Made by a program: the position numbers and the translations under genes. A stretch of 64,000 nucleotides of DNA, taken from the NCBI GenBank assembly GCA_964057225.1, contig OZ059897.1, forward strand, positions 13,826,001 through 13,890,000, read 5' to 3'. The stretch comes from Auanema rhodensis. Its lineage: Eukaryota; Animalia; Nematoda. How positions within the stretch are numbered: position 1 is the first letter of the stretch; each line of letters opens with the position of its first letter. Below are positions 30,101 to 42,348 of this stretch, one piece after another. The notes beneath the pieces are model-generated. The model had not been told where the DNA came from, ran no database searches, and worked only from the letters and a program-made list of their open reading frames with translations.

Positions 30101-32366
30101 ATTAAACCTTGAAATTTGAAAAATATTTTTTCTTCTAGCTTCAAGAACAAGGAGTTGATTGCTCAAAAAATCTCTGTTATCATTTAGTGTACAGAACTTT
30201 AGATGGTACATGTAATAATCTCAAAAAACCTATGCAAGGTGCTGCCTTCCGTAAATATATCAGACATTTCCCATCGCAATATGATGATAATCTAGGAGAA
30301 CCAATTGGTAAAATCTTTTGTTGCTAACTAAAAATTTTATTTTATATTCAGCTTCAATCACCAATTCGAGACCAACCGCTAGAGAATCCAACCGTGTTAT
30401 GCTTTCATCTGCTCAATCTGTTGTTCATGATAAAGTAAGAATATTTCTTTATTACCTTTATTATTTATTTTTTTCTAGTTTAACAACAACATGATGCAAT
30501 TTGGTCAATTTATGTCTCACGATATGGCTAAGACCACTCTTCAACCTTCAGCTCAATGTAAAACTTGTGAACCAATCAAGTCTAAGTGTATGCCAATCAT
30601 GATTACAGCTAAAGATCCAAACTCTTCGTATGTTTACACTAGTTATAACAACAATCTCTAACAATTCGAAATTACAGTTTCAAGCAGAAGCAATGCTTAA
30701 AGGTTTCTCGATCAGCTCCAATTTGTCATATTACCCCCCGTGAACAACTGAATGAGAATACAGCTTACATTGATGGATCCATGATTTATGGATCATCACC
30801 AAAAGATCTTCATAAATTCCGTGAAGGACGTACCGGACTTTTGAAAATGAGTAGATTCAATGATCAAGTATGTTTTTCATGTCACGTGAATTTCCACGTA
30901 AAAGATTTATTTTTTTTATTTTTTTGCTTAAATCTGATTGAAGCGGTTGTCTTATAATCATTGATATTTTCAGCTTGTTCTTCCATTTGATCAATCAAAA
31001 TGCGCTAACAAAGACAAGTGCACAGCTTCTTTCACTGCTGGTGATATTCGTGCTAATCTCTTCATTGGACTTAGTTCATTCCATATTCTTTTTGCTAGAG
31101 AACATAACAGGTAGCAATAGTCCTATATCATATATGTTAACATAATTATATTTACAGAATTGCTCGTCGTCTTCAAGAATTGAATTCTGCTTGGAGTGGT
31201 GACAGAGTTTTCCAAGAATCCAGAAAGATTGTTGGAGCTCAAATTCAGCACATTCTCTATACCGTAAAATATAAGATTTTAATTATTTAATAAAATATTA
31301 TTTTTTTAGGAATATTTACCTAAGCTTCTTGGAGTCTCTCTTGATAAAGTTATTGGAAAATACAACGGATACAAGGATGATGTTGATGCTACTATCTCTA
31401 ATGAATTTACTACATCTGCTTTCCGATTCGGACATGGAATGATTGAGGTTAGATCCATCTTAAGTTACATATATTGTATATTCTTGTAACTACAGGAATT
31501 TTACAAACGTCTCGACTTCTCTGGATCTAATATCACTCATGGAGGATTTTTCTTCGGAGACGGAGTTTTCAAATCAGGAAAAATTCTTTTTGAGGGAGGA
31601 ATTGATCCCATTCTTCGTGGATTTATGAACTCTGCTGTCAAAAGACCACACCGTATGACTCCAGCTATTACTGAGAAGATGTTCGGAACGTGAGTTTCAT
31701 TATACTTATGTGTATTCAACAATTATTTCCTTTAGAACTGACTTGGGATCATTGAATATTCAACGTGGACGTGATCATGGTATTCCTTCATACAACACAA
31801 TGAGAACATTCTGTGGACTACCTCGTGCAGCTGATTTCGAAGGACTCAAGGATATGATTTTGGACCGTAATCTTCGTATTGGACTTAGCCGTACCTACAA
31901 TACCACAGGTTCGATCTTTGCGAGCAAGTTTGATATCATTCATACGAGCTATCTTTAGATGATATTGATTTCTATGTTGGATCCATGCTTGAAGATCCTG
32001 TAGTTGGAGGTTTGGTAGGAACAACTTTGAGCTGTGTGATTGGCGAGCAGTTCAAGAGGCTTCGTGATGGTGATAGGTAATATAATTCTACATGTAACCA
32101 AGTACATCGAATAATATTCTAGGTTCTACTATGAACATCCAGGAATTTTCTCTAAGGATCAATTGGCTGAGATTAACAAATCCAGTTTATCTAAAATTAT
32201 TTGTGAAAATGCTGATCATATTGAGCTTCTCCCACAGGTTTATCCTCTTAAAGAAAATTATTTAATGTTTTTTTCATTTCAGGATGCTTTCCTCATCCCT
32301 GGAAGTCAATTGACGCCTTGCTCAGCCCTTCCAGTTGTTGATTTAACTAAATGGAAAACGAATTAA
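21190..32366 (+). CDS. Second ShK-domain animal heme peroxidase, with two ~4 kb introns
   Basis: Exon 1 (21190-21241) [17 protein letters not shown] splices in phase to 25611. The ShK domain spans 25611-25915 and coding resumes at 29805. Motifs: [57 protein letters not shown] at 32364-32366. Confidence 0.94.
24250..24325. repeat. Degenerate (TTC)n microsatellite
   Basis: Run of ttc/tgc/gtc/atc triplets in intron 1 of the peroxidase; explains the poly-Phe ORF at 24211-24396. Confidence 0.9.
28228..28532. mobile_element. 305-bp MITE-like element with perfect 31-bp terminal inverted repeats
   Basis: TACGATTATCATTACTTTGATGTCAGTTAGA at 28228-28258 is the exact reverse complement of 28502-28532. 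Both ends are TA (possible target-site duplication) and no long internal ORF is listed. Confidence 0.7.
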
Positions 32367-33053: not shown

Positions 33054-33144
33054 AAACGCCCTCAGTATGGACCGATCAGCAAAGAAATTCTGTCCGCCCG
33101 GTCGCGTACTCATCATCAGCGCATCAAATGATGACAAAAGTCGT
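33054..33144 (-). ncRNA. SNORD43: Box C/D snoRNA, SNORD43/snR70 homologue with 5' extension (copy 1)
   Basis: Minus strand has box C ATGATGA, guide GCGACCGGGCGGA before D' CAGA, C'-like TTGCTGA, box D CTGA and a terminal stem. CGGGCGGACAGAA matches the vertebrate SNORD43 guide/D' segment as I recall it. The +5 rule targets the C in 18S CCG[C]CCG (yeast Cm1639 / human Cm1703). Confidence 0.85.
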
Positions 33145-33183
33145 GCAGATAATTGGTGCATTTTCAACTACATTACAATTAGT

Positions 33184-33200
33184 TCGTATGGTTTATGGGT
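33184..33200 (-). promoter_or_regulatory. PSE-like upstream element of snoRNA copy 1
   Basis: ACCCATAAACCATACGA at about -40 to -56; 15/17 identical to the element upstream of copy 2, while the intervening spacer has diverged. Confidence 0.65.
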
Positions 33201-33622
33201 GCTGACCGTAATAATAAAAATGAACCACCACCTATACCAAATAAATATTATTTTTAACATGTTATACATGGTTAATACAACATCAATTATGAAATAAAGT
33301 AAAAGCTAAGTAGTATGTAAGGTGGTGCAGCACTTTATGGCCAAAACTCTTGGAGATGCTCATGGATGTGCTGAGATTAAAATTGAAGAGGTTTACTATT
33401 CATTATAGGGATAATGAACTTAAAACTTAAAAGAAAGCATTTTCAGTGACAGTAATAGCCATATATATATCTATCAAATTTTGTTGAGCATCCATTATAT
33501 TATTATCTTCAGCATTATCTTCTATTTCTTTGTATTCATCATTATTTTTGAGATAAATGATATTTTCTTCAGATGGATCTAATCACAAAGATTATAAAAT
33601 ATCTTCTTGATTTTATAAAATT

Positions 33623-33713
33623 AAACGCCCTCAGTAGGGACCGATCAGCAAAAAAATTCTGTCCGCCCGGTCGCGTACTCATCATCAGCGCATCAAATGA
33701 TGACAAAAGTCGT
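33623..33713 (-). ncRNA. SNORD43: Box C/D snoRNA, SNORD43/snR70 homologue with 5' extension (copy 2)
   Basis: Differs from copy 1 at only 2 of 91 nt, both outside the boxes, the D' guide and the leader. Flanks are unrelated apart from the PSE-like element. Confidence 0.85.
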
Positions 33714-33753
33714 ACCGATTTATAGATTACATTGGTTCCAAGATACATTTGCC

Positions 33754-33770
33754 TCGTATGTTATATGGGT
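33754..33770 (-). promoter_or_regulatory. PSE-like upstream element of snoRNA copy 2
   Basis: ACCCATATAACATACGA at about -41 to -57 from the conserved 5' end. Confidence 0.65.
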
Positions 33771-33936: not shown

Positions 33937-35134
33937 TTAACGTCTGGTTCCATCTTCGAAGAAGATTCCTCCGTCAAGAGCGCAATACTTGGGGCAAATT
34001 CCCTTTTCTCCTCCTTGTCCGTCTTTTCCTGGTCTTCCAGGATGTCCTGGAGTTCCATCTTCTCCGTTAACTCCTGGCTCTCCTGGTTGTCCCTTGTCTC
34101 CGGCGGCTCCTGGAGTTCCGTCTGGTCCTGGCTTTCCTGGTGGTCCGCGTGGTCCCTGTAATTTGATTTATTTTCGAAATATTCAAATATTAATATTTTA
34201 CCTCTGGTCCTGGTCGTCCTGGCTCTCCAGTTGGTCCTGGTTTTGGTTCGCCATTCTCTCCGGCTGGTCCAGTTGGTCCTTGTGGTCCAACAGCTCCTGG
34301 CTTTCCTGGGGCTCCTGGGCGACCCTTAACTCCTGGTTCTCCTGGAGCTCCATCTGGTCCCTTAGAACCATCAGGTCCAACATTTCCACAGCTTCCACTT
34401 GGTCCTGGTGGTCCTGGTGGTCCTGGTGGTCCACGTGGGCAAGGTTTACATGGTGGTGGTGTGACTGGTTTGCATGGTTTAGGTGGAGCACGTCCTGGGT
34501 TTCCAGGTAATCCATTAGCTCCAGCTTTTCCTGGACGTCCAGGCTCTCCAGCAGCTCCCTTGGCTCCTGGTGGCCCTGGCAAGCAGCAATTCTCGCAAAG
34601 TCCTCCATAGGTAAGTCCGGTAGCCTATAGTTCATGTCAATTAGATTAAACATATTTATGGGTTCATACCTCAACGAAAACACCGTAACCACCAGCAACA
34701 GTTGCAGGTAGTCCACTTTCAACATTCTCAGAAGATCCGTCATAAGCATTACGAGCTACACGAGTAGTGTTTTTAACAACAGGTGTAGAACGCATGAAAG
34801 AAATGTCACCAAATAAAGTTTTGGCTTCAGCCTACAAAAAATCATTTAGATCAAACAGAAAAACATGATTGACACAAACCTGACAAGTAATCATTTCATT
34901 TCTCATCTGATGACGAATACCAGATACATAGCGATGTACAATAGGCAATGAAACACTCAATGATAATACAGCTAATCCAGTGAATAAGACAGAAGCATAA
35001 CCAACGAATTGATATGCCTTAAAGAAAAACAAATAGTCTTTTAAGAAATATCATATTGTACTCAAACATTCAAACAATTAAGATGAATCTGTGTATCTAA
35101 GTATACTAACCTTATATTTCGACGAACAATCCAT
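33937..35134 (-). CDS. Nematode cuticle collagen
   Basis: MDCSSKYK|[10 protein letters not shown]...LSLSVSLP cuticle-collagen N-domain; Cys clusters; Gly-X-Y blocks; C-terminal [19 protein letters not shown]. Confidence 0.96.

Positions 35135-36816: not shown

Positions 36817-42348
<5,532 letters not shown>

Follow-up and report, generated by a model that had tools for sequence, protein, structure and literature searches.

The window analyzed here, a 64,000-nt stretch of Auanema rhodensis contig OZ059897.1 to whose positions all coordinates refer, carries two minus-strand copies (A and B) of an 89-nt gene resembling a 5'-extended box C/D snoRNA. A third copy (C) lies approximately 500 kb away on the same contig. 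Nucleotides of the RNA are numbered from the A of the motif ACGAC, which is nt 1. In pairwise alignment, copies A and B could be matched from ACGACTTTTG to GGGCGTTTAA (ending GGGCGT) with only two mismatches, one at nt 61 and one at nt 77, and the flanking sequences were diverged. The 5' limit of identity coincided with the A of ACGAC, at 33144 in copy A and 33713 in copy B, and the same boundary was observed in copy C. The 7-nt box C, AUGAUGA, starts 28 nt downstream of this A (nt 29-35). A previous sequence-only reading of this DNA had described an identity ending sharply 28 nt 5' of box C, and both the alignment of copies A and B and the sequence of copy C bear this out. The features of the locus are as follows.

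33056..33144, minus strand: copy A, 89-nt 5'-extended box C/D RNA; nt 1 = 33144; defined by the copy alignment and an Rfam SNORD43 match at 33057-33121
33625..33713, minus strand: copy B, 89-nt 5'-extended box C/D RNA; nt 1 = 33713; Rfam SNORD43 match at 33626-33690
L003:1501-1589, about 500 kb away on the same contig: copy C, the third copy, with a 5' boundary like that of A and B
33185..33200, minus strand: proximal sequence element (PSE) of copy A, ACCCATAAACCATACG; begins 56 nt ahead of nt 1; located in the window by exact match
33755..33770, minus strand: PSE of copy B, ACCCATATAACATACG; begins 57 nt ahead of nt 1; located in the window by exact match
33133..33144, minus strand: putative leader antisense element of copy A, nt 1-12, ACGACUUUUGUC; complementary to 18S 1704-1715 (GGCAAAAGUCGU)
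33702..33713, minus strand: putative leader antisense element of copy B, nt 1-12; same as copy A
33123..33132, minus strand: remainder of the copy A leader, nt 13-22; a weak hairpin of 4 bp involving nt 20-23 is possible
33110..33116, minus strand: box C of copy A, AUGAUGA, nt 29-35; 5' half of the terminal stem, GCGC(U), immediately upstream; from the sequence and the Rfam alignment
33094..33106, minus strand: D' guide of copy A, nt 39-51; nt 45-51 complementary to 18S 1594-1600 and nt 40-44 to 18S 1600-1604
33089..33092, minus strand: D' box of copy A, CAGA, nt 53-56; non-consensus, as in the SNORD43 consensus; from the Rfam alignment
33068..33075, minus strand: D-side element of copy A, nt 70-77, UCGGUCCA (UCGGUCCC in copies B and C); complementary to 18S 1610/1611-1617
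33062..33065, minus strand: box D of copy A, CUGA, nt 80-83; 3' half of the terminal stem, GGCG, next to it; from the sequence and the Rfam alignment

The neighbouring gene on the minus strand encodes a cuticle-type collagen with introns of 45-46 nt. Public poly(A)-type RNA contigs (four small runs from one study) covered nothing in this region except the collagen mRNA and had zero depth at both snoRNA copies; such data are uninformative for a non-polyadenylated RNA of 89 nt.

All three copies contain box C (AUGAUGA), box D (CUGA) and a terminal stem (CGCU/GGCG) of 4-5 bp, together with a degenerate C' box (UGAUCG). A scan of the whole window at Rfam gathering thresholds returned no match. In a relaxed search, the SNORD43 model aligned end to end with both copies, scoring 19.3 bits (A) and 18.3 bits (B) against a gathering score of 45; the search with this model that had been proposed earlier delivered a full-length match in both copies, at scores far below the family threshold. 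The internal arrangement agrees with the guide rule of box C/D RNAs, as nt 48 upstream of the CAGA D' box faces 18S C1597 within a duplex of 7 plus 4/5 bp. A spurious open reading frame overlapping the snoRNA had no matches when used as a protein query. There is little doubt that these are real box C/D genes equivalent to SNORD43/snR70. Judged by its sequence, the RNA is a likely orthologue and functional equivalent of SNORD43/snR70 that stands outside formal Rfam membership.

Targets were predicted on the genome's own rDNA unit (L008, 18S at 671-2424), whose 18S contains CACACCGCCCGUCGCUGUCCGGGAC and, near its 3' end, CCGGGCAAAAGUCGUAACAAGG. Guide nt 45-51 (CGGGCGG) are complementary to 18S 1594-1600 and nt 40-44 to 1600-1604, with C44 or C45 bulged. 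G48, the fifth nucleotide upstream of the D' box, pairs with C1597, the first C of the CCC in CCGCCCGUC (core CCGCCCG), and C1597 is thus the predicted site of 2'-O-methylation. On established numbering we take C1597 to be the position of E. coli C1402, yeast C1639 and human C1703, the target of SNORD43/snR70. The predicted pairing with the species' own 18S hence falls on the C1402 equivalent, and the SNORD43/snR70-type identity proposed from the letters alone is upheld by the boxes, the CAGA D' sequence, the guide and the fifth-nucleotide rule together. The whole-genome pattern search found this guide in the three genes and nowhere else in the 181-Mb assembly.

All three copies share an additional C within the D' guide (GCGAC-C-GGGCGG), which leaves a duplex of seven contiguous base pairs, a 1-nt bulge and a further 4-5 bp. 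The guide had earlier been described as weakened by this C. The description holds for the contiguous run, which is only 7 bp, and fails for the energy, since the bulged duplex (-22.5 kcal/mol) is predicted to be at least as stable as the one that the vertebrate consensus guide forms with the conserved core (-21.3 kcal/mol). A different target for the extra-C guide was considered and rejected, no perfect complement being present in the whole rDNA unit. Of all sites in the rDNA unit, the D-side element matches 18S 1610-1617 best, with an 8-bp complementarity located 5 nt downstream of the guide duplex, and with the caveat that this element partly overlaps the degenerate C' box.

In each of the three copies, the snRNA promoter element ACCCRTNNNNNRTACG precedes the A of ACGAC by 56-57 nt. 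In the U1, U2 and U3 genes of the same genome, the first base of ACCCRTNNNNNRTACG lies 55-58 nt before +1, and because the spacing is the same, transcription is expected to start at the leader. A pyrimidine stands directly before ACGAC in every copy. As in the PSE class of promoters, spacing matches that of U1/U2/U3 and no TATA box occurs at -25/-30; none was found anywhere in the 40-nt spacers between promoter element and start. The RNA carries a T4 run in all copies and a T7 run in copy B. Transcription by RNA polymerase III is unlikely because these T4-T7 runs inside the RNA would stop that enzyme; in Caenorhabditis elegans, RNA polymerase III terminates UM2 and UM3 transcripts at the first TTTT (PMC2527325). 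A conserved 3' box could not be recognized downstream of the PSE-driven genes. Each unit is very likely a TATA-less, PSE/UM1-type RNA polymerase II gene with its own promoter and a start at ACGAC. The earlier guess that the RNA belongs to a 5'-extended class, and not to the intronic snoRNAs, is strengthened by the snRNA-type PSE of every copy.

C. elegans provides a guide to the fate of such transcripts. PSE/UM1 transcripts of that species are capped, and their mature 5' ends correspond to the start sites (PMC2527325). Seven C. elegans C/D snoRNAs, including CeN22 and U3, bear a trimethylguanosine (TMG) cap (PMC2200864), as does CeR-2 (PMC2943600). By analogy, the leader is probably kept on a capped mature RNA.

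The leader sets these genes apart from other PSE-driven C/D genes in the genome. A genome-wide search for a PSE followed by TGATGA within 40-75 nt yielded approximately 13 further genes beyond the SNORD43-like three, most of them with a clear box D and terminal stems; the Rfam names among them were ceN22 (two copies), SNORD58-like and SNORD36-like. These roughly 13 genes have the start of box C at +7 to +14, and a start at +27/28 is confined to the SNORD43-like three. For the ceN22, SNORD58-like and SNORD36-like genes, the Rfam model begins 0-3 nt from PSE+56, and their transcripts are therefore taken to begin at the terminal stem. In the three SNORD43-like genes, the start of the SNORD43 model is 23 nt downstream of the predicted transcript start, and the 22-nt extra leader is identical in all three copies.

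Sequence variation among the copies is concentrated elsewhere. Nucleotides 1-38 are invariant in all three copies, and the five variable sites are nt 39, 57, 61, 63 and 77. The 8-nt D'-C' spacer accounts for three of the five and the 22-nt leader for none (hypergeometric p of about 0.014, computed by hand). The two that lie in rRNA-complementary regions alter pairing at helix ends only: C39A in copy C gains an A-U pair with U1605, and A77C in copies B and C gains a C-G pair with G1610. The promoter-to-start spacers and the 3' flanks of the three copies could not be aligned. In paralogues of another family (L058-L060), 5' ends vary freely and are matched by compensating 3' changes, which indicates that the promoter places no constraint on positions +1 to +7. 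The likeness of the three paralogues could also reflect gene conversion limited to the RNA instead of selection.

The invariant leader is complementary to the same 18S helix as the guide. The element ACGACUUUUGUC can form 12 bp with 18S 1704-1715 (11 Watson-Crick and one G-U), and nowhere in the rDNA unit does the leader have a better match rich in Watson-Crick pairs. When the leader was shuffled, a run of at least 12 bp with at most one G-U arose in 12 of 20,000 cases (6e-4) within a 133-nt neighbourhood comprising the target and its helix partner, and in 2.7% of cases anywhere in 18S, 5.8S or 28S. The sequence-only reading had reported a 9-nt complement, about 11 when extended; the complementarity is real and non-random, and its length is now put at 12 bp. 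The segment on whose presence in this species' 18S that reading depended is there. We take GUCGU with its preceding adenines to be the 3' strand of helix 44 with the equivalents of A1492/A1493, its partner CGUCG lying under the D' guide. The earlier structural premise, that the leader target is the helix partner of the guide target, is correct, given the species' own 18S sequence and established knowledge of helix 44. Two non-guide elements are consequently complementary to rRNA near the methylation site, the D-side element with 8 bp and the leader with 12 bp.

Folding predictions were examined for the leader by itself and in the complex. The leader:18S duplex has a predicted energy of -16.2 kcal/mol and the leader folded alone -2.7 kcal/mol. 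With the boxes and guide blocked, leader nt 1-9 were predicted to be unpaired, followed by a weak hairpin (nt 10-26); in the unconstrained fold, nt 12-18 pair with box C (UCAUCAU with AUGAUGA). Co-folding of the snoRNA with 18S 1586-1725 gave a minimum-energy heterodimer in which leader nt 1-8 sit on 1708-1715 and the guide on 1594-1604, and in which the body of helix 44 is kept intact. The two intermolecular helices are co-linear, so that no pseudoknot is required. The ddG of the heterodimer was -18.2 kcal/mol versus -12.9 +/- 2.4 kcal/mol for scrambled leaders, a modest net gain from the leader of about 5 kcal/mol, or about 2 standard deviations.

Taken together, the genes may be independently transcribed, most likely TMG-capped, 5'-extended SNORD43/snR70 guides that use accessory pairing with 18S, a reading to which we assign a probability of roughly 0.5. 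RNA polymerase II, recruited through the snRNA-type PSE promoter, would start at the A of ACGAC, and the C/D core (box C, CAGA D', degenerate C', box D and the 4-5 bp stem) would assemble a fibrillarin snoRNP whose D' guide directs 2'-O-methylation of 18S C1597. The single-stranded, capped leader (nt 1-12) would pair with 18S 1704-1715, the 3' strand at the top of helix 44 that includes the decoding adenines, and the element upstream of box D may pair with 18S 1610-1617. Leader and guide, co-linear with their targets, would form with the helix 44 body and the C/D stem a complex resembling a four-way junction, which would open the top of helix 44 only and offer C1597 to fibrillarin. Reliance on accessory pairing is suggested because the guide has just seven contiguous base pairs before the bulge. 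What we infer from these observations comprises the cap, the retention of the leader, its pairing with 18S in vivo and possible consequences for methylation or folding, and that the leader functionally pairs with helix 44 is, tentatively, given even odds or slightly less.

A more ambitious version of this proposal resembles the one originally put forward. The RNA would be bifunctional, guide and chaperone at once, gripping both strands of the top of helix 44 (1594-1604, 1704-1715 and 1610-1617); this appears quite unlikely. No less doubtful is the attendant idea that the decoding centre is kept unformed until Cm1597 has been made, release of the RNA then constituting a timed step in assembly of the small subunit. 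Should this chaperone reading be true, a folding role like that of U3 or U14 would be added to an ordinary methylation guide.

A simpler account, which we consider rather unlikely, is that the locus encodes a genuine PSE-driven SNORD43-like guide whose leader is trimmed or persists as a passive capped tail, the 12-bp match being a coincidence. A U-rich leader facing an A-rich target makes a match easier, and invariance could stem from recent duplication or gene conversion. Consistent with chance, the match was picked after the fact, 2.7% of shuffled leaders reach a 12-bp run somewhere in the rRNAs, there are only three paralogues with five variable sites overall, the energy of the guide duplex is already adequate unaided, and depth at the snoRNA is zero in the public poly(A)-type RNA contigs. 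However, the site-specific probability is about 6e-4, and the leader is the sole such extension among approximately 16 PSE-driven C/D genes. Chance also sits poorly with a leader that stayed invariant while flanks and promoter spacers diverged fully, and with the free variation of 5' ends in the L058-L060 family. As to trimming, capped PSE transcripts of C. elegans are not trimmed at the 5' end (PMC2527325, PMC2200864). If the leader does prove trimmed or inert, the locus would be an ordinary nematode SNORD43 equivalent with its own promoter.

The leader may alternatively act within the snoRNA or through proteins and not on rRNA, which is improbable. Transient pairing with box C or the small hairpin might time K-turn and snoRNP assembly or hypermethylation of the cap, as the junction of nt 12-18 with box C in the unconstrained minimum-energy fold and the weak hairpin at nt 10-26 would allow; yet nt 1-9, the part most complementary to 18S, lie outside that hairpin, and the match to the helix partner of the guide target is left unexplained. 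In the protein variant, the CUUUUG tract of the leader might bind Sm/LSm-type proteins, as suggested for C. elegans U3 and CeN120; two TMG-capped C/D snoRNAs of that species have Sm-like sites (PMC2200864). An Sm site in the leader was tried and rejected: C, not A, precedes the U tract, which misfits RAU4-6G / AAU4-5GGA (consensus from PMC2200864). Very improbable is that the loci are silent or decayed and that another, unrecognized guide or a stand-alone enzyme modifies the site. Zero depth in the public RNA contigs and the sub-threshold Rfam score would fit silence, but poly(A)-selected data would miss such an RNA, all three copies retain a PSE at the right distance, boxes and guide despite diverged flanks, and no other gene in the genome carries the guide.

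The preferred reading, a capped guide assisted by pairing of its leader, bears on how C1597 is reached. Methylation of the C1402 equivalent lies in the P-site/decoding centre and is needed before helix 44 closes, and the ways in which guides gain access to nucleotides that end up in stable helices are understood only in part. Should the leader indeed invade the partner strand, the principle of extra base pairing would extend from the flanks of a target to the opposite strand of its helix, and the boundary between modification guides and folding or processing snoRNAs (U3, U8, U14) would blur. For tests of this idea, the genome-wide set of PSE-driven C/D genes offers a clean internal control.

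Among known systems, two offer partial precedents for an RNA that contacts 18S twice. U14 combines a methylation domain with a processing domain, with two antisense elements on 18S, and U13/snR4/snR45 pair with 18S in a bipartite manner, leaving a nucleotide of its 3' region exposed. Both differ from the A. rhodensis RNA in their targets, and U13/snR4/snR45 also in the enzyme involved; neither showed sequence similarity in the Rfam scan of the A. rhodensis locus.

The RNA shares with SNORD43 (RF00221)/snR70 the target cytidine at the base of helix 44, CGGGCGG directly before a CAGA D' box, the order of boxes and a D side without an obvious methylation guide. SNORD43 differs in being intronic and about 64 nt long, whereas the A. 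rhodensis RNA has a PSE promoter, a 22-nt 5' extension and an extra guide C, and reaches 19 bits with the SNORD43 model versus the threshold of 45. A metagenome pattern scan recovered approximately eight eukaryotic SNORD43-like loci (L035, L037, L038, L040-L043 and L046) and three GC-rich chance matches; the extra C and a ACGACUUUU-like upstream element occurred in none of the eight or so loci, none of which is nematode; the contig L039, from a human oral sample and possibly human, was left out of this comparison. The corresponding scan of genome contigs gave one chance match only, in a GC-rich bacterial coding region, and that of viral contigs gave no match.

Accessory pairing is an established property of C/D snoRNAs, with yeast snR70 as a leading case: its guide duplex is among the shortest, and a conserved element in its D'-C' interval shows complementarity to rRNA just upstream of the target. 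Nop1 cross-links at this extra-pairing element, and retargeting it raised methylation five-fold (PMC3116282). The A. rhodensis RNA resembles the extra base-pairing C/D snoRNAs as a group in combining a short guide with a further element, outside the guide, whose complementarity to rRNA lies close to the site of methylation (van Nues et al. 2011, PMC3116282). Published elements of this kind are located in the D'-C' interval, the second guide region or spacers, and form 4-11 bp adjoining the target (PMC3116282). The D-side element fits the 'second guide region' type, while none of the published elements is a capped 5' leader on the helix partner strand (PMC3116282). The snR70 element sits in a D'-C' stem-loop and pairs immediately upstream of its target, whereas both candidate elements in A. 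rhodensis face downstream sequence: for the 5' leader it is the opposite strand of the helix, at a distance of about 105 nt, and for the D-side region the distance is 5 nt. Because accessory pairing has this precedent in snR70 (PMC3116282), the proposal is less novel and more plausible.

A literature search, conducted without the C. elegans snoRNA catalogue, did not find the combination of leader and guide described, and the exact strings occurred in no relevant paper. Capped 5'-terminal antisense elements are known in U8 and have been proposed for C. elegans CeR-2 (PMC2943600). CeR-2/CeN21 and vertebrate U8 are, like the RNA predicted here, capped C/D snoRNAs with proposed 5'-terminal pairing to pre-rRNA, with processing affected, and CeR-2 is likewise PSE-driven (PMC2943600). 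They differ in lacking a methylation guide and in pairing with the 5' end of 26S/28S (PMC2943600), in contrast to the A. rhodensis RNA with its guide and its predicted contacts on 18S helix 44. What appears to be new is the union of a canonical guide, a PSE promoter, a putative capped 5' leader and a leader target on the partner strand of the very helix that contains the guide target.

Upstream of box D, both copies of the SNORD43/snR70-like snoRNA carry the element UCGGUCC(C/A), which matches 18S positions 1610-1617; this site and the D' target are 5 nt apart, with the D' target upstream. Applied to this element, the fifth-nucleotide rule would single out G1612, and the element may have a second accessory or guide function. 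The elements and the protein-coding neighbours of the pair in the window are as follows.

33068-33075, minus strand: element in copy A
33637-33644, minus strand: element in copy B
30491-32366, plus strand: animal haem-peroxidase-like gene, exon-sized ORFs with the motif FGQFMSHD and a further ten-residue motif
33943-34830, minus strand: cuticle-collagen-type gene, introns of 45-46 nt
39447-39749, minus strand: ABC-transporter exon

The haem-peroxidase-like ORFs sit to the left of the pair. The 3' end of the collagen-type gene is only about 230 nt upstream of the copy B PSE (snRNA-type proximal sequence element) region, on the same strand. The collagen-type gene was strongly represented among RNA contigs, but no contig reached into the snoRNA.

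Elsewhere in the A. rhodensis assembly (G000), the snRNA-type PSE drives at least 13 box C/D snoRNA genes, found within loci L051-L070 (e.g. C7:5811108-5811828, C3:6574006, C3:14202586 and C4:8486588-8487425). Members of this class include two copies of ceN22, SNORD58-like and SNORD36-like genes, and three clustered paralogues whose terminal stems covary. Box C is positioned between +7 and +14, and the first position of the Rfam model deviates by no more than 3 nt from the predicted transcription start (PSE+56). The PSE-driven transcript L052 (C1:16071955-16072029, minus strand) has its box C at +14 and a longer, GC-richer body. No Rfam family matched it at gathering level, and a processing-type C/D RNA is one possible identity.

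Long tandem arrays of U1 (C3:15.86-16.08 Mb, period about 727 bp), U2 (C1:10.96-11.28 Mb, about 2.46 kb) and U3 (C5:14.95-15.06 Mb, about 371 bp) were also located. The U3 array shares its contig with the window, at a distance of about 1 Mb. The 18S 3' end yielded about 650 matches, at C8 about 11.0-11.85 Mb, C8:3030-66163 and C4:575095. The main rDNA arrays have a period of 6567 bp and a second array type one of about 8394 bp, and one isolated copy is present on another contig.

SNORD43/snR70-like C/D genes were also recovered from metagenome contigs L035, L037, L038, L040-L043 and L046, which derive from microbial eukaryotes. These genes lack both the extra guide C and the 5' leader element, and their D' box reads CAGA or CUGA. 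In at least one pair, L035 and L043, they seem to lie within introns.
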